NCBI RefSeq assembly: GCF_032444005.1
Contig: NC_091291.1
Span: forward strand, 135,098,001 to 135,162,000
Source: Ranitomeya imitator
Taxonomy: Eukaryota
Direction of reading: 5' to 3'
DNA: 64,000 bases
The notes below the pieces were generated by a model, which was given only the letters and a program-made list of their open reading frames with translations, had not been told where the DNA came from and searched no databases. The first letter of the stretch is position 1, and every line of letters begins with the position of its first letter. A program made the position numbers and the translations under genes. Below are positions 15,451 through 57,649 of this stretch, piece by piece.

Positions 15451-15894
15451 GTGAGTCCCGGGGCCGAAAAAAAACGAGTCTTTACTAAACTTACGGGGCG
15501 TATTTTTTTTTTTTCAATGTTTGCATGCTATCTTTATTGTTCCTGACAAAAGTATCAGAAGTTGCAGTGTTTTAGTCACAGGAGGGGTGTAGCTGAGTGG
15601 GTGCAGGGTGGCTGGGGTTTTCTGGGTGGGCTTGTGATGTGCTGCTGCCCCCTGTGTCATGTGACTGACGTCGTGGTGTATGATGGCGGCCGGCGTGAAC
15701 TTTCCACGACGTCGTATGTGACATTGCGGTCGTCGCGGAGCCCGTTGGCCGATATGACGCGTTGTTGCATTGGCCATGTGACCACAGGAATTTAAAGGGA
15801 TGTTCTCCTAGTAAGTGACAGCGGACACTTCATTCTCTGGATTCCTTAAAGGGGTTAAAAAAATACCCGTTACTTCCACGATGAGCTTATCTTA

Positions 15895-16178
15895 GGCTAC
15901 GTTCACATTTGCGTTGTTGGGCGCAGCCTCACGCGCCCCTATCTTTAACATGGGGGGGGGCGCATGGACATGCGCCGGTATGCGCTGTATTGCGTTTTAC
16001 GACGCATGCGTCAATTTGACGCACCAGACAGGGTGCGGACGACGCTCCTTGTAGCATCTTCCCTGCGCCAAAATTCGTGAACATTACTAGTTTATGTCGA
16101 CGCATGCGTAAAAAAACACGCAGCGTTGTGGGATGCGTTGACGACGCTGCGCCCAACAACGCAAATGTGAACGTAGCC
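15895..16178. mobile_element. PIF/Harbinger-type MITE
   Basis: TIR GGCTACGTTCACATTTGCGTTG at both ends. TTA TSD. Confidence 0.9.
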
Positions 16179-28096: not shown

Positions 28097-28312
28097 CTAT
28101 GACCAGTTTAGATTAAACTTTTCTTTTTCGCTGAAACTTTTACTTTCCTGGAGAACCAACTTCTGTGTCCCACCTTCGTTACTGACTGCTAAATAATAGC
28201 CCGATTTTAGAGCTGATTGGAACTTGAAGCCGCCGTCGTCTTCGCAGAATTCTTTTTGGAAAAAGATGACGTCACTGCGGTTTCCGCCAATATCGTTGGG
28301 TAAGTCTCCTTT
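28097..28312 (-). CDS. IL18: Interleukin-18-like paralogue A, last exon
   Basis: KGDLPNDIGGNRSDVIFFQK..FKFQSALKSGYYLAV..KLVL matches the human IL-18 last exon (PPDNIKDTKSDIIFFQR..FESSSYEGYFLA..KLIL). Phase-0 acceptor ctcttacag. Confidence 0.92.
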   Translation of the reverse strand, partial: KGDLPNDIGGNRSDVIFFQKEFCEDDGGFKFQSALKSGYYLAVSNEGGTQKLVLQESKSFSEKEKFNLNWS

Positions 28313-30278: not shown

Positions 30279-30412
30279 CTTGAAGTAAAGCTGCATGTCT
30301 TCCGTGCAGCACATGTAATATTTCTTATCTTTATGCTTTACTCCGAAGGCAACTGAAAGTCCGTCACTCCTGCAAGTTGAGTTATATATCTGAAGCTCAA
30401 ATCTCTGCCAGT
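30279..30412 (-). CDS. IL18: IL18-A penultimate exon (134 nt)
   Basis: WQRFELQIYNSTCRSDGLSVAFGVK..MQLYFK. Phase 1 to 0 and 134 nt, as recalled for human IL18 exon 5. Canonical splice sites. Confidence 0.9.
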
Positions 30413-34326: not shown

Positions 34327-34467
34327 TACCTGATCCTGGGTTAGCAAAGACCGCAGTACCACCATCGGGGTCATCCGGGTGAGCTTCCAAGCATTGTTTG
34401 AAAATATTCTCAATAGTTGCTGTTATGCACCTTTTTGACTTCCTCCATGCATCTGTCTGTAAATTGT
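34327..34467 (-). CDS. IL18: IL18-A exon carrying the predicted cleavage site LQTD|AW
   Basis: (D)NLQTDAWRKSKRCITATIENIFKQCL..AVFANPGSG. Acceptor gacattacag, phase 1-1. Donor GTGAGA (an in-frame alternative would end the exon at 34330). Confidence 0.88.
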
Positions 34468-34741
34468 CTGTAATGTCAATAATGCATTGAACATTAGAGA
34501 AAGGTAAAAATATAGACACTTGATACTGAAATTTAAATTGCTCCTGTACTTTCTGATGATCTTATTTCATACAAAAAGTGATAAACAGACAATCTACAAA
34601 AAGTTTTTGAAGTTATTTTGTTTTACTCCTGAAAATTTACCCATAAGTGCCGGCCTATATGTGTTTCCTTTCCTTTTAAATTGCTACCTACTACCTGTAT
34701 TCAAATGTAATTAATCTCTAACAAAGACACTGAGACGGATG

Positions 34742-35725
34742 ACAGGAAGTGGTGGCGGGTCTTGTCTCTCTACAGGAAGTGGGGGGAGGGTCTTTGCCTC
34801 TCTATAGGAAGTGGGGGTGGGTCTTGTCTCTCTACAGGAAGTGGGGGGAGGGTCTTTGCCTCTCTATAAGAAGTGGTGGCGGGTCTTGTCTCTCTACAGG
34901 AAGTGGGGGGAGGGTCTTTGCCTCTCTATAGGAAGTGGGGGTGGGTCTTGTCTCTACAGGAAGTGGGGGGAGGGTCTTTGCCTCTCTATAGGAAGTGGGG
35001 GCGGGTCTTGTCTCTCTACAGGAAGTGGGGGGAGGGTCTTTGCTTCTCTATAGGAAGTAGGGGTGGGTCTTGTCTCTCTACAGGAAGTGGGGGAGGGTCT
35101 TTGCCTCTATAGGAAGTGGGGGGCGGGTCTTGTCTCTCTACAGGAAGTGGGGGGAGGGTCTTTGCCTCTCTACAAGAAGTGGGGGTGGGTCTCTGCCTCT
35201 ACAGGAAGTGGTTGGTCTTTGCCTCTCTACAGGAAGTGGGGGAGGATCTTTGCTTCTCTACAGGAAGTGGTTGGTCTTTGCCTCTCTACAGGAAGTGGGG
35301 GAGGATCTTTGTTGCTCTTCAATAAACGGTTCATCTTTCTCTCTCCACTTGAAGTTGTGGGGTTTTTGTCTCTACAGGAATTGGGGGGTCTTTGCCTCTC
35401 TACAATAAGTGGTTGGTCTTTGTGTCTCTACAGGAAGTGGGGGGTCTTTGCTTCTCTATAGGAAGTGGGAGGTCTTTGTCTCTACAGGAAGTGGGGGAGG
35501 CTCTTTGTTGCTCTACAATAAGTTGTGGGTCTTTGTGTCTCTACGGGAAGTGGGGGGGTCTTTGCTTCTCTACAGGAAGTGGTTGGTCTTTGCCTCTCTA
35601 CAGGGTGTGGGCTCAGGTCTTTGTCTTTCCATGAAGTGGGCTGGGTATTTGTCTCTATAGGAAGTGGGGCATCTTTGTATCTACAGCAAGTGGTGTGTTG
35701 TTTTTTTTCTCAACAGGAAGTGGGG
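34742..35725. repeat. G-rich 30-32-bp minisatellite (partly ~62-bp dimer) in an IL18-A intron
   Basis: Units cta(c/t)aggaagtgggg..gggtctt(tgcc/g)tct repeated about 30 times. Confidence 0.92.
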
Positions 35726-36437
35726 GCAGGTTTTTAGCTCTGTACAGGAAATGGGGCAGGAGATGGAACTCTACCAAAGTGTCATTGCATCACTTTGTAA
35801 TCTACACATTTTATTCAGATTTTTTTTATACAATAGTATAAACAACCATTTTTATATTTAGAGGTGATGTCTGATTAATGTGACTTTATTTGAATTGACG
35901 CCAGGTCGGCAATGAATTGATGTGCTACTTCTTAATCACCCAGCAATTAATTTGTCACCAGGGGAAGCTACGACATACTTGCCAATTTTTAGGGAGGCAT
36001 CATTGGAAGGAAGCAACCGTGGCATGCTAACTGGCTGTCAGATCTTTTTCCCTATAGCTGCAACTCCTTTTTTTTTTTTTTCCAACCCATACCTTCCCCA
36101 TGCATCTTCCACACCCCTATATATTTATTCTGATGTCCTGAAAGCAACGTTTGTAAAGTGCTCCCAGAATATTTCCTTATTCTTTCGGTAGCCCTCCCCT
36201 TTTTCTTCCAGGAAGGTCAAGAGTTGGAAATCTATTTCCTCTCCTTACTTGCATCTTAATAAATGAATAATTGCTTTGGTCTAGCAGAGCTAGAGCTGTC
36301 TATGTTGGCTTTTAAAGGTAGGTCCTAAATCAGATCCCTTTTTAATAAAAGTGATGGTGATTTCATCTTGGAGATGGATGTGTAGACTGGTTCGGGATTT
36401 CTGGTAGTTATGAAGAGTGTGAGGAAAAACACCTCAC

Positions 36438-40602: not shown

Positions 40603-40653
40603 CCCTGAAATGTAAGATCCCATCCAGTATGGAAAATATTTCAAAGTCAATTT
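40603..40653 (-). CDS. IL18: IL18-A propeptide exon (51 nt)
   Basis: Strong acceptor (poly-T)cttctgcag and donor GGG|GTGAGT. (E)IDFEIFSILDGILHFR aligns with human CINFVAMKFIDNTLYFI. Phase 1-1. Confidence 0.85.
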
Positions 40654-41500
40654 CTGCAGAAGAAAAAAAAAAAAAAATTAAATACAACCGATAATGGTGA
40701 TTAAATCCCTTTTAAATTAAACGTGTCGGGAGATCAGCTGTGATCTACGCGGAAAATTGTAAGTAAAGGAGCTGCGCAGCTTAGAGAGACGGAAAACATT
40801 CAGCACACCGCTAGTCCTCCACTCAAACCAGCGTCCATGTCTTCTCAATGGGGAGAGGGGACTAAGCCGCTGCCAGACGCTTCTGCTAGAGACTGATCAA
40901 CTGTTGTAAAAAAAAAAAAAATGGATCAGATGTTTGAAACCTTTAAACTTCTTTGGAAACCTGAATTTGTTAAATTAAGTTCAAAGAGATGGAACTGCCG
41001 CAGAACGAGTCGTCTCTTTCATTGCTGGGCACGTATTCATTGTAGCGTTTCCTTAGTGCTTTTTCAGGAGGGCTACGGAGCACGCACACCTGAAAAAGAC
41101 ATAGTCTGCACAATCTCTCATTCCGTTCTACTCCTTTAAAAATGAAGAGGACTCCCATTCGGCTGACCAACATTTCAGATATGGGGGGAATCAGAGCTAT
41201 TATATTTAATGAGTTTTTTTTAATGTATTTTTATACGGAGGTGCATATAATTATTATGATGTGCAGTTTAACATAGTTTTCCTTTTTATCAAATCTACCA
41301 GAAGGTGGAATCGATCACCTGATGCCACATGACATAAATAGATTGATCGGCCGTCATCACAGCAGCAAATTAATACAACATTAAATAGAATTATCCTTAA
41401 TGGCATTCAATGGTTCGGACAGTAAGTAAGAGCCCGGGAACTTTACCTTTTTTTTTTTTTTTTTTTTTTGTCGAACAAGGATTTTTTTAATCACTTATAG

Positions 41501-42810
41501 CAGGGGTGGGCAATTAATTTTCCCAAGGGGCCTCATGAGAGACAGTGACTGGTGTGGGGTGGAGGCTGAACCGATCGTCTAAAGCTAATTCTGCTCAAAA
41601 TTAATATTCGTACATAAGTAAAATGCAGTTACGGTAATTGTTTTACATTACCATTGTTTCACTTAATATTGAGGAGAATTAAGTATGATGACCTCCCACT
41701 ATATGTATGAGCCAGCACACATCCCCTCTATATACCATAAGAGCCCACACGGAGCATCCCTACCTATATACATTACAAGCCCCCACATAACCCTTCTATA
41801 TGAACCCCCGCTTAGACACCTAGATACAGTATGAGCCCCAATATACAGTATGAGATCCCACATAGTCTCTATACAATGAGACCTCATATAGCCCCTTGTA
41901 TACAGTACTGGGTGAGCTCTCCCACAGCCTCCCTATATGCTGTGTGAGCCCTAACATAGCCTTTCTATATACAGTGAGCCCTTACATAACCCCAATACAC
42001 AGCTTGAACCCACACATGGCCTGTATACAGTATAAGCTCTCACATAGCCTCCTCTATATACAGTATGAGCTCCAACATAGCCTCCTATATACAGTGAGAG
42101 CCCTACATTGCTGCGTTTATACAGTGTGAGCCTCCTATATACAGTATGATCCCCACAGTCTCTACATGGTGTGAGCCCCAATATAGACCCCCATATACAG
42201 TGTGAGCCCCACCATAACCACCTCTATATACAGTATGAGCTCCCATATAGCCCCCATATACAGTATGAGCTCCCACATAACCTCCTATATACAGTGGGAG
42301 CCCCAATATAGACCCCCATATACAGTGCGAGCCCCACCATAACCTCTTCTATATACAGTATGAGCTCCCACATAGCCTCCTATATACAGTGTGAACCCCA
42401 GTATTGTCTCCTCTATATACAGTATGAGCTCCCATATAGCCCCTATATACAGTATAACCTCCTATATACAGTGGGAGCCCCAATATAGACCCCCATATAC
42501 AGTGCGAGCCCCACCATAACCTCTTCTATATACAGTATGAGCTCCCATATAGCCCCTATATAGAGTATAAGCTCTCACATAGCCTCCTCTATATACAGTA
42601 TGAGCTCCAACATAGCCTCCTATATACAGTGTGAGCCCCAGTATTGTCTCCTCTATTATCTATATACAGTATAAGCTCTCACATAGCCTCCTGTATATAC
42701 AGTATGAGCTCCAACATAGCCTCCTGTATACAGTGGGAGCCCTACATTGCCCCTATGTACACATTGCGAGCCCCCACATAGCCCTCAAAATACAGTATGA
42801 GCCCCCACAA
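41501..42810 (+). mobile_element. hAT (Charlie-like) element 5' end with an expanded ~30-bp minisatellite (~41700-42810)
   Basis: Starts CAGGGGTGGGCAATTAATTTTCCC, same family as the copy ending at 51141. Array of cacatagcctcctatatacagtatgagctc-like units. Right end not found. Confidence 0.75.
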
Positions 42811-43224
42811 AGCCTTTTTTCTTAAACATACCCCTTTATGGAGGGTGGAGTAATTAGAATATCCCATCTGCTCTTAGAAAATTGGTAGTTTGTGTTGTAA
42901 CAAGATTTGAAGGGTTAAGTTTATCTGGAGATAGCAGCTCCCCTCCAAAAACGTTTTGCATAAGCCATGGCACATTGGGGTTCCGGGCCGCTCTCCCTCT
43001 CATTTTTTTTGCATATTTTCTTCTTGCATGTATTATTAAATGCCCCCCCTGGGATGTAAGCGGTGACCTGATATGGATCGCAGCAGAGGGACTAGGATAC
43101 TTTGCTGTTGTTTTGGCAAGGGAAGAGTGTGACTGGTGGCCATCAACCACTATGTTTTGTTTTCCTTTTTTATCCTAATTTTGTATTTTTTGACTCGCTG
43201 CATATGTCTGTATACATTTTTGCA

Positions 43225-43701: not shown

Positions 43702-43720
43702 CTGCTGCTGTCATGTCCAT
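43702..43720 (-). CDS. IL18: IL18-A first coding exon (MDMTAA)
   Basis: GCGCCATGG Kozak context, donor CAG|GTAAGC, phase 1, in frame with the 51-nt exon. Completes a 573-nt, 190-aa ORF. Confidence 0.75.
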
Positions 43721-48949: not shown

Positions 48950-49072
48950 GGCCAAATTCTCTGGTCTCCTGCCAGAAAGAAATTATAATGTGCCTATAAC
49001 CTGCCTTATCACATCAGTCAGTATATTTTTATCTTCTTGTACATCTTACTTGTCGTATCAAAGCTTTTGTTG

Positions 49073-49288
49073 TCAGTGTTTTCCAACAAGAAAAAAGTTT
49101 AATGTTTCATCGATGGAAACTTTAGGTTTAGGTTTAAGCATCAACTTCTTTTCTTTGTTCCATGCGAGAAAAAATCCTTCCTTCAATGATGACTCGAAAC
49201 AGAAACTTTCGCACCCAGTCGAAAATTCTTGCAGGTAGAAGATCAATTCACTGGTCTTCGTTGGAATTTCTGGTGGCAATTTATGTTC
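49073..49288 (-). CDS. IL18: Interleukin-18-like paralogue B, last exon
   Basis: EHKLPPEIPTKTSELIFYLQ..FCFESSLKEGFFLAW..KLMLK. Phase-0 acceptor ttactag. 216 nt, same as IL18-A. Confidence 0.92.
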   Translation of the reverse strand, partial: EHKLPPEIPTKTSELIFYLQEFSTGCESFCFESSLKEGFFLAWNKEKKLMLKPKPKVSIDETLNFFLVGKH

Positions 49289-49563
49289 CTAGTAAGTTAA
49301 GTCCTTGGTTAATAGTTGTAAATATTACTAAAGACACATAATGTATACTATAAATATGTAACCGTAAAAAACATGGATGACATGGGTAAAATAACAAGTT
49401 CTAAAGAAAAATTTAGACTTCTCATTTGAGAAGCATTCAATTTAAGGAAGGCTGACATGACCATTTTTTTTCTCACCCATATTTTGTTCACAATTATGGC
49501 TCCATCGATTCTTCTTAACCTCACCGCAGGTCTTTTGACCCAAGTTAGCAGCTGTGGCCATAA

Positions 49564-50069
49564 GGCTACTTTCACACATCCATTTTTCGCCGCCAGGCGC
49601 AATCCGTCGAATTGAGAAAAAACGCGGATCCAGCAAATTATGCCGCCGGATCCGTTTTTTTTTCCCATAGACTTGTATTAGCGCCGGATTGTGCTGGATG
49701 GCCTTCCGTTTTGTCCTTTTTTCGCCGGATCAGGTAAAAAATCCTGATCCAGCGGCCGGGCAGAATGCACAGATGAACTTTTTTTGTGTCCGGCGAAAAA
49801 ACGGACAGCACCTGATCCAGTGCCGCCCGGCTTTTCTTGTAATGGAAGCCTATGGTGCCGGAATCCATTTTTCCAGTCTGTATATACCCAGAAATGGCAT
49901 TCCGGGTCTCTCTCTCTCTTACCTCCTCCGATTGGTGAAAACACATCGACGAATCCGGCAGAAGAACTGAGCCGTCGCATCAGTTTCTTCACTCGTTTCG
50001 CCGGATCCAGCAATCCGTACCACCGCCGGATAATGCCAGACGGCGAGGGACGGATGTGTGAAAGTGGCC
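49564..50069. mobile_element. PIF/Harbinger-type MITE in the last IL18-B intron
   Basis: TIRs GGCTACTTTCACACATCC / GGATGTGTGAAAGTGGCC. TAA TSD. Confidence 0.9.
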
Positions 50070-50139
50070 TAATGCAGACCAAAACGTATGACCACTGTGT
50101 GGTGGTGTGAACTTTCCCTTATACAAAGGAGTAATCAGA

Positions 50140-51141
50140 AACGTGAGCCAGGGGCTCTCATTCTGGACAAGAGGAGGCTATGGGGCTCTAAAGCTGGACA
50201 AGAGGAGGCTATGAGGGTCTCATTCTGGACAAGAAGAAGCTATGGGGCTCTAAAGCTGGACATGGGAAGGCTATGAGGGTCTCATCCCGGACATGGGACG
50301 GCTATGACGCTGTCATCCTGGACATGGGGAGGCTATGAGGGTCTCATCCTGGACATGGGGAGGCTGTGGGGGTCTCATGCTGGACATGGGGAGGCTGTGG
50401 GGGTCTCATGCTGGACATGGGGAGGCTATGGGAGTCTCATGCTGGACATGGGGAGGCTATGGGGCTCTCATGCTGGACATGTGGAGGCTATGGGGTCTCA
50501 TGCTGGACATGGGGGTCTATGGGGCTCTCATGCTGGACATGTGGAGGCTATGGGGTCTCATGCTGGACATGGGGGTCTATGGGGCTCTCATGCTGGACAT
50601 GGGGAGGCTATGGGGATCTCATGCTGGACATGCGGAGGCTATGGGGATCTCATGCTGGACATGGGGGTCTATGGGGCTCTCATGCTGGACATGGGGAGGC
50701 TATGGGGATCTCATGCTGGACATGCGGAGGCTATGGGGATCTCATGCTGGACATGGGGAGGCTATGAGGGTCTCATGCTGGACATGTGGAGGCTATGGGT
50801 CTCATGCTGGACATGGGGGTCTATGGGGCTCTCATGCTGGACATGGGGAGGCTATGTGGGGCTCTCATGCTGATCATGGGTAGGCTATGTGAGTCTCATG
50901 CTGATCATGGGGGGGCTCTGTGTTTGCACATATGATATATAGAAGGGGTTGTGTGTGGGTTCAAATGGTATATAGGGGATGTCCGCTACTTAATTCTGCT
51001 AAATATTAAATTATACAATTAATATAAAATAACTACAATTAATATGTTAATATTGATCAAAATTAATTTCAGACTATTGGTTTGGCCTCCACAACAGTCA
51101 GTCTCTCGTGGCCCCTAGGGAAAATTAATTGCCCACCCCTG
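50140..51141 (-). mobile_element. hAT (Charlie-like) element end with a 30-bp minisatellite (~50140-50920)
   Basis: Reverse complement of CAGGGGTGGGCAATTAATTTTCC ends at 51141. Array of ggggctctcatgctggacatggggaggcta units. Confidence 0.78.
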
Positions 51142-51342
51142 CCGTATCGTGTTACCCTCACCCTGTGTTGTCTGAATAGTATTAAGCCCACGGGGAAGGA
51201 GAGCGGGCGTTCAGTGGGATGAGCCCTGGTCTATGTGGTGTTTCTAGACAGCCGGGCCAGAGGACAAGAGCACCCGCTGACCCCCGTTTCTCCACAAAGG
51301 GGTTTAAACCCTCAGGTATTATATTATATGTTCGACTCTTAC

Positions 51343-51488
51343 CTCAACATAAACCGCATCACTTTCTACATTTCCAGCCTTCAGGATGTAATTTCTTTTT
51401 CCTATTTTACAGCTGATGGTTACCGGTAATCCGTCTCTACCATGAGCATTGTCTTTGTATTTGTGCAGATAAAATGTCGTTTGCTCCG
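51343..51488 (-). CDS. IL18: IL18-B penultimate exon (146 nt)
   Basis: (A)EQTTFYLHKYKDNAHGRDGLPVTISCK..VYVE aligns with human RTIFIISMYKDSQPRGMAVTISVK. Phase 1 to 0, gtgttacag / GTAAGA sites. Missed by the ORF track. Confidence 0.9.
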
Positions 51489-51905
51489 CTGTAACACAGA
51501 CATATTGCCAAACTCCTCAGTGTGGATACATTAATAATAATTTCCATTTCTTACATTACGGCTCATCTTTAGTTTTGTCAGGTTTCTGATTCTTTACTGT
51601 AAGAATAGGATAGCCTGCAGCTCCATACCTGTCAGATGCATCATGAATCAATGGGACGAATTACAATTCATTTGGATCTGTGAATGCTATTATGGCTCCC
51701 AACTCAACAGGATGGGTGATAACTTGCTGTTCATCAGAAGCCCGACCCACCAAATCCTGAGAACAGGTCTCTAAAGTCGTGGCTTAAATGTAGTAATGGC
51801 CGTGCATGTCCACCATCATTCTATTAATTGTCTGTGGGTCTCGTTTTTACTTTTTGATCGTTTTTAACTATTTACCACTCAAGGTAAATAGAAGCTATTG
51901 CATAC

Positions 51906-52043
51906 CTACAGTATCCTGGACAGGTTCAAAAATGGCATGGGACTTTTCTGGGTGGACGATCAACAGTTCGTCTAGGTCATTTTTAATGATCTGTGGAAAT
52001 CCATTTTGCCTACCAGCACTCATTTTGAAGGCATCAAATTCAT
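51906..52043 (-). CDS. IL18: IL18-B exon carrying the predicted cleavage site (D)EFD|AF
   Basis: EFDAFKMS..QIIKNDLDELLIVHPEKSHAIFEPVQDTV aligns with human SVIRNLNDQVLFI..PLFEDM. Acceptor taattacag, donor G|GTATGC, phase 1-1. Confidence 0.88.
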
Positions 52044-53572
52044 CTGTAATTACAGGATAAAAATGGAAGCTAAAACTCAACTTATGATCTGTTCGCGTTA
52101 CATCAGAAGTACAGATTTATATACTAATAACCAGTTTACAAGATGGTTCTCTTATTGTGGCTATACTTCTCCAGACTTCAATGTCTGCATGTCTCTGTCC
52201 CCACCTACAGCATAATCTATTGATGGGATCTATTGGAACCATAAAAAAATGCAATTCTATATGGTGGTCAACTCTATGGTTCAGATTCAGCGACCTTCAG
52301 CTTCTTCATTGCTCTTGATGAGGGGGTGTGATGGAGTCAGATGCTTCTTATTCATGAAGAGGGACTGGAGTGAAGTTTCTAGTGGAATCCCTCATCTTGA
52401 ATCAGACATGCTGTGGCGTCATGCCCCATCCACGATTTTGTCCTTCCCTAACTGTGCCAGCCGTTTGGCTCCGATTCATCAAGACTTCTGACTTCCTCAC
52501 TGGTCTTTATAAGAGGGTGTCGTGAAGTCATGAAGAAGGACTGGAGTGTGGTTTCTGGTTTAGGGAAATGCTTGTCATGAATCAGACATGCTGACGTCAC
52601 ACCGTCTGGCGAAATGGGTGGAAACGACAATTTTTTTGTGCAACTCCGAGTTGCTCCAAAATTTTGCAGCTTCTCAAAGCTTTTACACAACCTTTTGGGC
52701 ATAAACCTATGATGAATTGGGGCCATAAGCTCCAACATATTAAACCTTTAACCCCAGTGAGCTCACCCAATGGTAATTAAAAAGTTATTGACATGGTCTG
52801 CTCTCCTTCAAGCTTTTATATCTTGACCTTTTATACCTTGACCTATATCTTGATCTTTTCAAAGTTGTCATCTGGGAGAAGTTGAGTTTCATGGAAATAT
52901 TCAGCCCTTTCCATGCTCCTTTTAGAGGCTAAACCCTTACATGAACTTCTCTTTGCCAATACGCCTATTTTTTTACCCCCTTCGTGTGACTCAACAACAT
53001 TCCTACCACACCTGCCTAAAACTTTTGCACATGCATATTTTTGGCTGAGAGGAACTGGTATTTTTCTTCCAGTGTAGACAGACATAGGATCCAATATAGT
53101 TCTTGTACTATGACTGTGGTTCTACATTTTCCAGTCACCGATTCAGGTATACGCCATTTTCCAATTACGCTACAATTATGGGTCATGTTCGAAAAAGTCA
53201 ATCACTTCTCCGTGTGAATTACCAATTGAGATGAAGCAAAGAAAAAAAAAGGGTTTTTCCCTGAATTCTATCACGCTTCCTGTAATTGTAGTTTTTATAG
53301 TTCATGATAAAACCACATCTTTCTCTGCAGTTCTCCAGTGTTCTGAGCTCTTCTACTTGGCTGTAGCTGCCAGAGCGGAAGCTTCAAATTAATGAAATTT
53401 TCTATTAACTAAACACATAAGCCCCTTTAATAATCTTTACCACCATGACCGTCTTTATTACCCCTTCGAGCCCTAGACCAACAATCTAAAGGGTATACAT
53501 AAATCTAGTACAGACATATTAAATTTCAGCATGGGTACATAAGTTCTAGAAGTAAGTCTGAAATCATATTAC

Positions 53573-53605
53573 CAGGTGAATGTAGTTTCATTTGCAGAAC
53601 ATAAT
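53573..53605 (-). CDS. IL18: IL18-B candidate 33-nt propeptide exon
   Basis: Long pyrimidine tract ..tttattcaag, donor CTG|GTAATA, phase 1-1. Encodes (H)YVLQMKLHSP, loosely like human NFVAMKF. Confidence 0.62.
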
Positions 53606-54349
53606 CTTGAATAAATAAAGAAAAGAAGATGTAAAAAACATAAAGAACTCATAATAGTAAAGTTAACACAAGACTGTATGATGAAATTACAGGAATTGGT
53701 GTTGCAATCTTGTTCTTTCAATGTAATGTAGAAAATGCTATCCCAGCAAGCCATGACGTGTCTGTAGCTTTATGGAGTCTTACGGTCCATTACATGGGCA
53801 AATTTCTGCCCATAATGAACATTCATTTAAAGGTTCATTTAAGAGGGCCAATACAAACTGTGTGGGGCAGAATGGTCGATAATATGACCGTTCTGTCCCC
53901 ATACAGCAGGCATGTTATCCTTCTATCCTAATACATTAGACATGTTGTTGTTACGTCCCCATACAGCAGGCATGCTGTGGTTCTGTCCCCATACAGTAGA
54001 TATGATGTCGTTCTGTCCCCATACAGCCGATATGTTGTCATTCTGTCCCCATACAGCAGACATGTTGTCCTTCTGTCCCCATACAGTAGACATGTTGTCA
54101 TTCTGTCCCCATACAGCAGACATGTTGTCGTTCTGTCCCCATACAGTAGACATGTTGTCCTTCTGTCCTAATACAGTAGACATGTTGTCGTTACGTCCCC
54201 ATACAGCAGACATGCTGTGGTTCTGTCCCCATACAGCCGATATGTTGTTATTCTGTCACCATACAGTAGACATGTTGTTGTTCTGTCTCCATAAAGCAGA
54301 CATGTTGTCGTTACGTCCCCATACAGCAGACATGTCCTTCGGTCCTAAT

Positions 54350-54526
54350 CAGGGGCGGACATACCATTGGTGCAACCTGTGCAGCTGCACAGGGGCCCAA
54401 GAGGTAAGGGGGCCCCTTTCTCGCTCCAAAGCAAGTGCAATTTTGCATTTTTAGAAGTTCTCAGGCTGCAAAGGGCCCATATATTGTTCTTGCACAGGGG
54501 TCCTTTTCTGACTGTGTCCATCAGTG
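54350..54526. mobile_element. hAT MITE (177 bp) in the minisatellite
   Basis: 8-bp TSD GTCCTAAT (54342-54349, 54527-54534). Imperfect CAG..GGAC TIRs. Confidence 0.8.
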
Positions 54527-54894
54527 GTCCTAATACAGTAGACATGTTATCATTCTGTTCCCATACAGTAGACCTGTTGTTGTTCTGTTCCCATACAGTA
54601 GACATGTTGTTGTTCTGTCCCCATACAGCAGACATGTTGTCGTGTCCTAATACAGTAGACATGTCTACTGTACGGGGACAGAACGACAACATGCTGTCCT
54701 TCTGTCCCCATACAGTAGACATGTTCTTCTGTCCCCATACAGCAGACATGTTGTCCTTCTGTCCCCATACAGTAGACATGTTGTCCTTCTGTCCCCATAC
54801 AGTAGACATGTTGTCCTTCTGTCCCCATACAGTAGACATGTTGACATGTTGTCCTTCTGTCCCCATACAGCAGACATGTTGTCCTTCTGTCCCC

Positions 54895-55567
54895 TGTTAT
54901 GAATTGGTGGTTTAGGAGCAACATGGGACGAGCTCTGAAGGAGGTGGAACCTGTACTGACCGCAGTCCCTAAGCTCAACACAACACTAGAAGTAGCCGTG
55001 GGATGCTCCTGTCACTCCCTAGGCACCTCGTCACAGCCTGAGAACTAACTACTCCTAAAGATAGAAACAGGAAAACTATCTTGCCTCAGAGAAAATCCCC
55101 AAAGGATAGATAGCCCCCCACAAGTAATGACTGTGAGTGGAGAGGGAAAAGACATACGTAGAATGAAACCAGGATTTAGCACAGGAGGCCAGTCTAGCTA
55201 GATAGATAGGACAGGACGGAATACTGACAAGCTGGACAAAACATAGAATGCACAGAACGAATAAGTTCACAACATGTGGACAGAAAAGAGCAAAGAAAGG
55301 ACTTATCTTTGCTGAACTGGTCAGGATATCAGGGAAATCCAAGAGAGATGTGAATCCAACCAGGAACTATAGACAAGTGGCACTGGCTGAAGGGAAGAGC
55401 CAGGCATAAATAGCCGAGCAGAAAGAAAATCAGTGGAAGCAGCTGCAGACTGCTAAATCCAAGGAGCAGCCATTCCACTTAAAACCACCGGAGGGAGCCC
55501 AAGAGCAGAACTCATAAAAGTGCCACTTACAACCACCGGAGGGAGCCCAAGAGCGGAATTCACAACA
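54895..55567 (-). mobile_element. Solo LTR (673 bp) in the minisatellite
   Basis: TGTTATGAA..TTCACAACA inverted termini, flanked by duplicated GTCCCC. Orientation tentative. Confidence 0.85.
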
Positions 55568-57140
55568 GTCCCCATACAGTAGACATGTTGTCCTTCTGTC
55601 CCCATACAGTAGACATGTTGTCCTTCTGTCCCCATACAGTAGACATGTTGTCGTTCTGTCCCCATACAGCAGACATGTTGTCCTTCTGTCCCCATGCAGC
55701 AGACATGTTGTCCTTCTGTCCCCATACAGTAGACATGTTGTCGTTCTGTCCCCATACAGCAGACATGTTGTCGTTCTGTCCCCATACACCAGGCGTATTG
55801 TCCTTCTGTCCCCACATACAGTAGACATGTTGTCGTTTTGTCCCCATACAGTAGACATGTTGTCGTTCTGTCCCCATACACCAGGCATGTTGTCGTTCTG
55901 TCCCCATACAGCAGACATGTTGTCGTTCTGTCCCCATACAGCAGACATGTTGTCGTTCTGTCCCCATACAGCAGACATGTTGTCCTTCTGTCCCCACATA
56001 CAGTAGACATGTCCTTCAGTCCCCATACAGCAGACATGTTGTCCTTCTGTCCCCACATACAGTAGACATGTCCTTCAGTCCCCATACAGCAGGCATGTTG
56101 TCGTTCTGTCCCCATACACCAGGCATGTTGTCGTTTTGTCCCCATACAGTAGACATGTTGTCGTTCTGTCCCCATACAGCAGGCATGTTGTCGTTCTGTC
56201 CCCATACAGCAGGCATGTTGTCGTTCTGTCCCCATACAGCAGGCATGTTGTCGTTCTGTCCCCATACACCAGGCATGTTGTCGTTTTGTCCCCATACAGT
56301 AGACATGTTGTCGTTCTGTCCCCATACACCAGGCATATTGTCGTTCTGTCCCCATACACCAGGCATGTTGTCATTTCGTCCCCATACAGTAGACATGTTG
56401 TCGTTCTGTCCCCATACAGCAGGCATGTTGTCGTTCTGTCCCCATACACCAGGCATGTTGTCGTTCTGTCCCCATACAGCAGACATGTTGTCGTTCTGTC
56501 CCCATACACCAGGCGTATTGTCGGCAGCACATCCTATGTTTACATGTTGCAATGTGAAGCTGATATGAACCAACTTAGCCATAAAACGAGCATTAGACAT
56601 AGAACGAGCCTTTGGTTCGTTCTTCAGTCTATCACATGACTTGTATATACAGCCCAATAATTGGGAATTAGGATGTACTTGTACATCTCAGACCACAGGG
56701 ACACTTGATGTGAAAACACTGAAAGGGGCTGGCTTGGCTGATGAACTGAGCCTGACAGCCGGCCTGTTTCATCCCATGCTGACATTTCTTGCTTGCTTTG
56801 GATTGAAGGTATAAAATTGGAATATCAGTGGTGATCTAATAAGTAAAGTATATTAGTTATTAGTTTTATTAATTCAAATTGATTTGCAAATACCTTTTAT
56901 GTCCCCTTCAAATGATGAAATTCTGTCCGCCTGCTGCCACCACTAGAGGGAGCTTGGGAGCATGCCGCATACTGTTTCTTTACTGTGTGCATTTACTGGC
57001 TCACGCAGCATCACATTACTATTTGCTCTACGTCCATATATAATAAATATTCTTAAATGGAAAAATGTATAAAAAAATGCATGGAGCTCGCATTGTTTTA
57101 CCAAGCACACACGTTTAGAAATGTAGTGACTTTGACTTAC

Positions 57141-57162
57141 GCTGACTTGGCCTTTCATCCAT
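57141..57162 (-). CDS. IL18: IL18-B candidate first coding segment (MDERPSQ), within exon 57141-57176
   Basis: Acceptor (T)10cag at 57177, donor C|GTAAGT, AAGATGG Kozak context, phase 1. Gives a 555-nt, 184-aa ORF. The frame is open upstream of the ATG, so a longer N-terminus is possible. Confidence 0.6.
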
Positions 57163-57649
57163 CTTCCGCAGAAAAGCTGAAAAAAAAAATTGATTTACTT
57201 TTAGTGAATGGTTAAAATCAGGCCCTTTCCCTCTTTCCATTTCGCACCCAGACTCCTATTGTGTAACACTCACTTTGGTCACATTGCAACATTTTGTTTC
57301 TTATTCGCAGAATCACTGAAAAATTGCAGAAAATACAAATTAATTACTGTACATCAAGCAACAAATACTATAACACCCGGCCATGGGTACACGTGTCTCC
57401 CCATGTACACGGAAATGGAGGCTGTGATGGTGGCAACCTCTGCCCATTGGCTATAAAGGCATCCATTTAAAGGATGAGCTTTATCATCATCATGTATCAA
57501 TTAAAGGGGTTGTCTTATCTTAATTAAGTTTCTGAAAAGTGCTTTAAAAAAAAGCAACTTTGCAATTTACCGCTCAAGAATGGGGGTATTTTTTTTTCAA
57601 TTCCATAGTTCTCTGCCTAGCTTATCCACCACCAATTTATCAGCTAAGC

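Follow-up and report, generated by a model that had tools for sequence, protein, structure and literature searches.

Which proteases would mature the products of two interleukin-18 (IL-18) genes that sit side by side in a frog genome? The window analysed here is a 64,000-nucleotide stretch of Ranitomeya imitator DNA (RefSeq assembly GCF_032444005.1, contig NC_091291.1, positions 135,098,001 to 135,162,000, forward strand), and positions below are counted from its first letter. Using a scan for stop-free stretches together with exact peptide mapping, we located two IL-18 genes, A and B, arranged in tandem and both on the minus strand. The predicted cut at the end of the pro-peptide follows DEFD in B and LQTD in A (written DEFD/AF and LQTD/AW, the slash marking a cut or, in nucleotide sequence, a junction). 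We lean towards a reading in which B may be matured by caspases that cleave DEVD and A is of the inflammatory-caspase type; we infer both the identity of the caspases and the activation itself.

The maturation site of B lies at 52027..52043 (-) and begins with a codon that is split by an intron. Reading the minus strand from 52043 gives ttacag/AT GAA TTT GAT GCC TTC. The P4 Asp is composed of G53573 and the AT at 52043-52042, and is followed by P3 Glu (52041-52039), P2 Phe (52038-52036), P1 Asp (52035-52033), P1' Ala (52032-52030) and P2' Phe (52029-52027). P4 is Asp because exon 3 ends in G, at 53573, and exon 4 starts with AT (G/AT); an earlier reading of the window from its letters alone (the sequence-only reading) had made the P4 Asp depend on just such an upstream exon. 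Across the exon 3/4 junction the precursor reads HSP-D-E-F-D/A-F. The complete pro-peptide is 33 amino acids long, MLQCDQTFLRKMDERPSQHYVLQMKLHSP-D-E-F-D/A-F-K, and DEFD is the sole DxxD motif in the whole B protein.

To support this junction we relied on sequencing contigs aligned to the stretch 49000-53700 of the window. Contigs of runs X5 and X7, which come from two independent studies, contain the joints 52043/53573, 51488/51906 and 49287/51342. All three are CT..AC on the plus strand, hence GT..AG when read along the gene. Beyond the 52043/53573 joint exactly 33 letters align, equal to the length of exon 3, and the contigs differ from the window by 0-2 mismatches per exon over exons 4-6. 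Additionally, the annotated (Gnomon) orthologues of Dendrobates tinctorius and Ranitomeya variabilis read HSPDEFDAF with the same junction (...YVLQMKLHSP-DEFD-AF). Window letters, spliced contigs and orthologues thus return the same PDEFD/AF that the sequence-only reading had proposed, and the check it had called for, confirmation of the junction from transcripts, gave the 53573/52043 joint in two studies and no P4 other than Asp.

It is very improbable that the P4 Asp is an artefact of the gene model, arising from a skipped exon 3 or from contigs of a processed retrocopy. Exon 2 ends in C, such that a splice from exon 2 to exon 4 would create CAT and place His at P4 (HEFD); a Phyllobates isoform does carry HEFD/AC, and the run type was called RNA by guess. 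Against this, two contigs from independent studies hold exon 3 joined at 53573/52043 with canonical splice ends, and the Gnomon models of D. tinctorius and R. variabilis agree. We rejected the exon 2 to exon 4 splice for the main transcript, as both spliced contigs hold exon 3. The Phyllobates terribilis protein in question, IL-18 isoform X3 (P0031), has a duplicated maturation exon, with the first copy, spliced straight onto exon 2, reading HEFD/AC and the second, after the exon 3 sequence, reading DECD/AF. In run X1, one contig (51906-52452) runs from exon 4 into the upstream intron 3, and low-depth intronic contigs occur in the same run; this read-through is probably unspliced precursor or DNA carry-over.

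The corresponding site of A lies at 34445..34462 (-), with P4 Leu (34462-34460), P3 Gln (34459-34457), P2 Thr (34456-34454), P1 Asp (34453-34451), P1' Ala (34450-34448) and P2' Trp (34447-34445). The minus-strand letters from 34465 to 34445 are AAT TTA CAG ACA GAT GCA TGG, or N-L-Q-T-D/A-W, preceded by Asp (D-N-L-Q-T-D), and the pro-peptide measures 29 amino acids. The NLQTD/AW assigned to A beforehand is therefore borne out by the window letters and by the NCBI protein P0040 (the interval 34448-34465 covers NLQTDA). A also holds a second caspase-like sequence, D-D-P-D/G, at residues 55-59 (34361..34375, -), in a mature-domain loop between the strands at 49-53 and 61-65. This is the sole DxxD motif in A, and B has no such internal motif. 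In the model of A the loop is an exposed beta-hairpin of the mature domain, and DxxD/G at this loop is kept in 6 of 7 hyloid A orthologues (DDPD, DDTD, DEPD, DLHD). Position and conservation suggest that DDPD/G is a candidate executioner-caspase inactivation site, like the caspase-3 cuts in human IL-18.

We next asked where these sites fall on the IL-18 fold, using AlphaFold2 models, derived from an alignment of 25 frog and newt sequences, of A itself (P0040) and of the R. variabilis B orthologue P0030, which has the same DEFD/AF. The mean predicted local distance difference test (pLDDT) score was 83 for the B orthologue and 84 for A. The beta-trefoils are confident; confidence in the pro-peptides is low, with 10-residue block means of 38-51 over residues 1-30 (44-51 for the B orthologue). 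The top Protein Data Bank (PDB) matches of both models are human IL-18, with Z of 21-24 and a root-mean-square deviation of 1.4-2.4 Å over 144-150 residues, while IL-33 and IL-1beta reach Z of ~18. In the structure alignment (VIA-align), residue 35 of the B orthologue, the Ala after DEFD34, superposes on Tyr37, the first residue of mature human IL-18. Residue 30 of A, the Ala after LQTD29, falls on the same human residue, the one next after LESD36. Because both P1' residues superpose on Tyr37, both cuts would be made at the mature N-terminus that caspase-1/4 create in human IL-18, in agreement with the placement of the two sites at human LESD/YF in the sequence-only reading. The P1 Asp column at human D36 is kept in 23 of the 25 aligned sequences. 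A and B are leaderless pro-cytokines whose pro-peptide ends in Asp where human pro-IL-18 is cut.

Family assignment agreed with the fold. PF00340 (IL1 domain) was assigned to P0040, P0030 and P0001, and phmmer against the PDB returned IL-18 at E ~3e-8 for the A protein and the B orthologue alike. The 45-aa B exon by itself gave no match in phmmer against the PDB, and full-length orthologues were needed. In the B-orthologue model the first strand begins directly behind the site, at residue 36, and confidence in the pro-peptide is low. This model is closer to the mature form than to pro-IL-18 (8spb_C, template modelling score 0.57), whose solved human pro-domain is structured. Removal of the pro-peptide takes away a net charge of -2.3 in B and -6.4 in A, leaving mature forms that are near neutral and not positive; the charge-switch idea put forward for tongue sole is thus only weakly mirrored in frog A and B.

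We compiled the cut sites of 15 B-lineage and 8 A-lineage frog sequences, plus a newt. In the B lineage, Ranitomeya and Dendrobates have DEFD/AF and Anomaloglossus has DEID/AF; DAVD/AF is found in E. coqui, DVVD/AF in Pristimantis and Hyperolius, DLLD/GF in Engystomops and DKVD/GF in Leptodactylus. Hyla, Mantella, Pelodytes and Spea all have DEVD/AF, Xenopus tropicalis IL-18 has DEVD/GF, and Ascaphus has DETD/SY. Of these 15 sequences, 14 have Asp at P4 as well as at P1, and all have Ala, Gly or Ser at P1'. Only a second Anomaloglossus copy (P0005), YVLN/AF, departs from the Asp pattern, having lost both Asp residues. The sequence-only reading had asked for conservation of DExD in orthologues, and the outcome is strongly positive for D-x-x-D; it had also treated DExD as special to this B gene, which does not hold, as D-x-x-D marks the anuran B lineage as a whole.

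The A lineage displayed a different and equally stable pattern. Ranitomeya and Anomaloglossus have LQTD/AW, Leptodactylus LQTD/SW, E. coqui and Pristimantis LETD/AW, Bufo LQAD/AW and Pyxicephalus LQSD/DY, while a frog transcript from Logan (P0043) has LQIE/AW, with Glu at P1. Leu occupies P4 in all eight and Asp occupies P1 in seven. The newt (Lissotriton) sequence, LESD/HW, contains the human tetrapeptide. The P1 Asp and the lineage-specific P4 are kept across many frogs while the neighbouring P5, P3 and P2 positions vary, and for this reason the sites are not a product of chance. Both genes are present in E. coqui, Pristimantis, Anomaloglossus and Leptodactylus, with consecutive locus tags in Pristimantis.

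Recent work showed that the choice of caspase for the maturation of IL-18 and IL-1beta is steered by the tetrapeptide before the cut. All caspases favour a small P1' residue, which hence does not discriminate; this removes one part of the motif logic in the sequence-only reading, while the other part, the different P4 preferences of caspase-1/4/5 and caspase-3/7, fits the kinetics of the human enzymes. Relative kcat/KM values for Ac-DEVD-AMC are 482 for caspase-3, 561 for caspase-7, 310 for caspase-8, 1.4 (1.41) for caspase-1 and 1.3 for caspase-4, with no activity detected for caspase-5 (PMC12371506). For Ac-LESD-AMC they are 59 for caspase-8, 10 for caspase-10, 5.0 for caspase-1, 4.7 for caspase-5 and 1.4 for caspase-4, with none detected for caspase-3, -6 or -7 (PMC12371506). 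These are human enzymes acting on tetrapeptides, and frog caspases may differ. By these kinetics, A-type sites should be closed and B-type sites open to executioner caspases.

Like human and mouse pro-IL-18 (33LESD36/Y37, cut by caspase-1/4/5), A and B are leaderless beta-trefoils with a pro-peptide of ~30 residues and a P1 Asp at the same position. A resembles human IL-18 in its P4 Leu (LETD in E. coqui and Pristimantis, LESD in the newt), whereas B differs in its P4 Asp, which by peptide kinetics opens the site to caspase-3/7; both frog proteins differ from human IL-18 in having Ala and not Tyr at P1'. Caspase-3 does cut human IL-18, but elsewhere, at or near DCRD76, and that cut is inactivating (PMC12953802), unlike the one predicted for B. 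The closest precedent for B is the tongue sole (Cynoglossus semilaevis), whose pro-IL-18 is activated by caspase-1 (YFED46), caspase-3/7 (46DNID49) and caspase-6 (SFTD55) (PMC12953802). There too a non-mammalian IL-18 has DxxD at the end of its pro-peptide, and the executioner cut yields an active cytokine. In tongue sole, however, the overlapping or adjacent sites are on one protein, whereas neobatrachian frogs have the two motif types on two paralogues.

Two further proteins provide points of reference. Frogs and salamanders lack GSDMA and have a GSDME with prototypical caspase-3 sites, which is the only pore-forming gasdermin reported in them, beside the non-pore-forming PJVK (PMC10948149). 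GSDME belongs to an unrelated family, but as proposed for B an executioner-read DxxD-type site turns an apoptotic signal inflammatory. In IL-33, an IL-1-family member, caspase-3/7 cut a DxxD (DGVD178) inside the cytokine domain and inactivate it; this site resembles the candidate DDPD/G of A and not the maturation site of B.

With B as a substrate of DEVD-cleaving caspases, pro-IL-18B would be matured by the executioners caspase-3/7 and probably by caspase-8. Cells with apoptotic caspase activity would then set free an active IL-18-type cytokine, plausibly with GSDME pores. A, with its L-(Q/E)-x-D, would by analogy with human LESD be a substrate of a caspase-1-type enzyme and possibly of caspase-8/10, and not of the executioners. 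Because frog GSDME carries caspase-3 sites, an IL-18 matured by caspase-3 would have a matching exit pore, and GSDME and IL-18B may co-operate in this way. B putatively escapes caspase-1, although the ~3.5-fold preference of human caspase-1 and the role of exosites mean that caspase-1 may still mature it. Most likely, the change in B was a gain of sensitivity to executioners and not a loss of sensitivity to the inflammasome, because caspase-1 discriminates between DEVD and LESD only ~3.5-fold and caspase-8 may cut both. The split that the sequence-only reading had drawn, with A for the inflammasome and B for apoptotic caspases, is thus favoured by the motif kinetics and the tongue-sole precedent, but not as a clean division, given the overlap through caspase-8 and caspase-1.

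Several observations weigh against an executioner-matured B. The P2 Phe of the dendrobatid site is atypical, most other frogs having Val. The newt also lacks GSDMA yet keeps LESD, so that any tie to the loss of gasdermin does not hold strictly. Strong as it is, the splice evidence derives from assembled contigs, in runs whose type was guessed to be RNA. Peptide specificity can mispredict protein cleavage, since caspase-8 cuts Ac-LESD-AMC and not pro-IL-18. Human caspase-1 favours LESD over DEVD only ~3.5-fold (5.0 versus 1.41), and caspase-8 cuts DEVD efficiently (310; PMC12371506). Recognition of mammalian pro-IL-18 also depends strongly on exosites (PMC12953802, PMC12371506).

The last of these points also favour a reading, unlikely in our judgement, in which a single enzyme, caspase-1 or caspase-8, matures the two paralogues alike and the P4 residue tunes the rate or reflects a broad S4 pocket in frog caspase-1. 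Caspase-8 cuts both tetrapeptides, human caspase-1 accepts DEVD with only the modest penalty above, and exosites dominate recognition in mammals. Tongue-sole caspase-1 is flexible and uses alternative sites (PMC12953802). Additionally, Xenopus, Spea, Pelodytes and Ascaphus have no annotated IL-18 other than the DxxD form, no A-type exons were found in the 10 kb flanking X. tropicalis il18 on each side, and the DxxD form of those frogs presumably serves inflammasome signalling too. What speaks against a shared protease is the strictness of P4. In the lineages sampled, Asp is held there from Ascaphus to the dendrobatids while P5, P3 and P2 vary, which indicates that a protease recognising the P4 Asp has imposed selection, and P4 Leu is equally strict in A. 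Reading of a P4 Asp is a hallmark of caspase-3/7-type S4 pockets.

Quite improbable, by our estimate, is a DxxD site in B that does not activate at all, because the cut silences or disposes of the protein, because no cut is made, or because B is a pro-peptide-independent non-canonical or antagonist ligand. Caspase-3 cleavage of mammalian IL-18 and caspase-3/7 cleavage of IL-33 are indeed inactivating (PMC12953802), a pro-peptide is absent from some hyloid IL-18-like relatives (Bufo P0023 and the double-domain proteins), and the Anomaloglossus YVLN/AF copy has lost both Asp residues. The predicted cut in B, however, falls exactly at the position of the human mature N-terminus and would leave the whole beta-trefoil intact, and the same kind of cut activates IL-18 in tongue sole.

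Executioner maturation of B can be combined with the internal site of A into a broader proposal, which is tentative and taken as a whole doubtful. Frogs, without GSDMA-D, would have only the caspase-3-cleavable GSDME, so that caspase-3/7 would open the pore and make the cytokine. The B lineage, including Xenopus DEVD/GF, would be the main vertically inherited IL-18 lineage and would be executioner-matured. A would be a second, neobatrachian gene serving the inflammasome or caspase-8, but destroyed by executioners at DDPD/G. The two paralogues would then respond to apoptosis in opposite ways.

How did the pair arise? Maximum-likelihood trees rooted on the newt recovered an A clade with support of 98-99/95, and a sister clade (91-94/88-91) that holds all DxxD sequences. 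Branching within the DxxD clade roughly follows frog phylogeny. In an approximately unbiased test, the constraint that all neobatrachian sequences form one clade gave p = 0.08, and a later duplication within Neobatrachia may be compatible with this value. For the ancestral state we relied on the newt sequence and on the LESD published for human and mouse. As LxxD occurs in newt and mammals, the simplest reading is that the ancestral motif persists in A and that P4 became Asp on the B stem, earlier than the frog crown group. The split-codon P4 Asp of B lines up with an Asp two residues further upstream in A (D-N-L-Q-T-D). As judged from this alignment, the B site seems to have arisen through a shortening by two residues, which brought an already present Asp to P4.

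Other IL-18-like genes were encountered in frogs during this analysis. Spea bombifrons has a second, very divergent IL-18-like gene (L002:17170-17923, -), tail-to-tail and ~2 kb past il18, with a last-exon fragment at ~15776-15895; it forms a long branch and does not group with the A clade. Several hyloid proteins annotated as 'uncharacterized' (Rhinoderma, Pristimantis, Dendropsophus and others) consist of two tandem IL-18-like trefoils in ~330-345 aa, and some relatives, e.g. Bufo P0023, have a single trefoil. These double- and single-trefoil proteins have neither a pro-peptide nor a caspase site, and none is in the window. In the tree they fall on the B side, within its hyloid portion and as the sister group of the hyloid B genes, and in Pristimantis the locus tag of one stands directly before those of the B and A genes. 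A tblastn search over the 64-kb window found no IL-18-like gene beyond A and B, and no double-domain IL-18-like gene.

The gene models underlying the two proteins are as follows. Gene B spans 57292-49073 (-) in six coding exons, and the joined coding sequence encodes 195 aa with no stop. The protein is 92% identical to D. tinctorius 'interleukin-18-like', and an annotated orthologue of the same name exists in R. variabilis. The coding part of B exon 1 (57274..57292, -) reads ATG TTG CAA TGT GAC CAA A/gtgagt, giving MLQCDQ plus 1 base, with a peptide match that is exact to P0030 and P0001. Exon 2 (57141..57176, -) encodes ..TFLRKMDERPSQ plus C and ends ...CAG C/gtaagt. Exon 3 (53573..53605, -) is 33 nt long, AT TAT GTT CTG CAA ATG AAA CTA CAT TCA CCT G, with the donor G/gtaata. 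Exon 4 (51906..52043, -) holds the maturation site together with the initial beta-strands of the mature cytokine, and is bounded by the joints 52043/53573 and 51488/51906. Exon 5 (51343..51488, -) was placed by peptide mapping and spliced contigs, and exon 6 with the stop codon (49073..49288, -) by HMMER hits to IL-18 family proteins and spliced contigs. An alternative exon 4 donor, ACT/GTAGGT, was rejected on reading phase and on the transcript joint at 51906.

Gene A has five coding exons and encodes the NCBI protein 'interleukin-18 [Ranitomeya imitator]' (P0040, 185 aa) at 100% identity with zero differences. Each exon matches P0040 exactly: the coding part of exon 1 (MDMTAA; 43703..43720, -), exon 2 (EIDFEIFSILDGILHFR plus G; 40603..40654, -), exon 3, which holds the maturation site (34330..34467, -), exon 4 (30279..30412, -) and exon 5 with the stop codon (28097..28312, -). 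The exon junctions of A rest on this identical protein. An alternative A acceptor, TTTACAG/ACAGAT, was rejected, as P0040 matches an exon starting at 34467. A second annotated R. imitator product of A, P0047 (122 aa), joins the end of exon 2 (...GILHFR) directly to GLSVAFGV.. inside exon 4; it is without the maturation site and the first strands and is probably mis-spliced or mis-annotated.

Outside the exons, long tandem minisatellite arrays occupy B intron 2 (~53900-56700) and A introns (~34700-35800 and ~41700-42900). These arrays are open in all three frames, e.g. with repeated ...GQNDNMSAVW... and ...PPLPVERQRP... peptides. In B intron 5, at ~49580-49790, the contigs of all four runs add up to a very high depth (180-680) and loose ends are numerous; this short segment is probably a high-copy repeat or transposon fragment outside the gene.

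Executioner activation of IL-18 is already known, having been published for one teleost. The new elements are the division of two motif types over two paralogues, kept across Anura in the sequences compared, and the canonical DEVD/G in Xenopus IL-18; in the searchable library we found no literature report of any of these elements, be it the frog motif, the paralogue pair or the Xenopus site. How caspase specificity couples cell death to the maturation of IL-1-family cytokines is an active question, and frogs offer a natural experiment in which the fold and the cut position are the same, the P4 residues are mutually exclusive and conserved in the sampled lineages, and there are no caspase-1 gasdermins. 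X. tropicalis IL-18 carries the textbook DEVD/G site, which makes a test simple. Should caspase-3/7 prove to mature B, frog apoptosis would be IL-18-inflammatory by its very nature, and this would bear on amphibian immunity to ranavirus and chytrid and on the use of Xenopus as a model.
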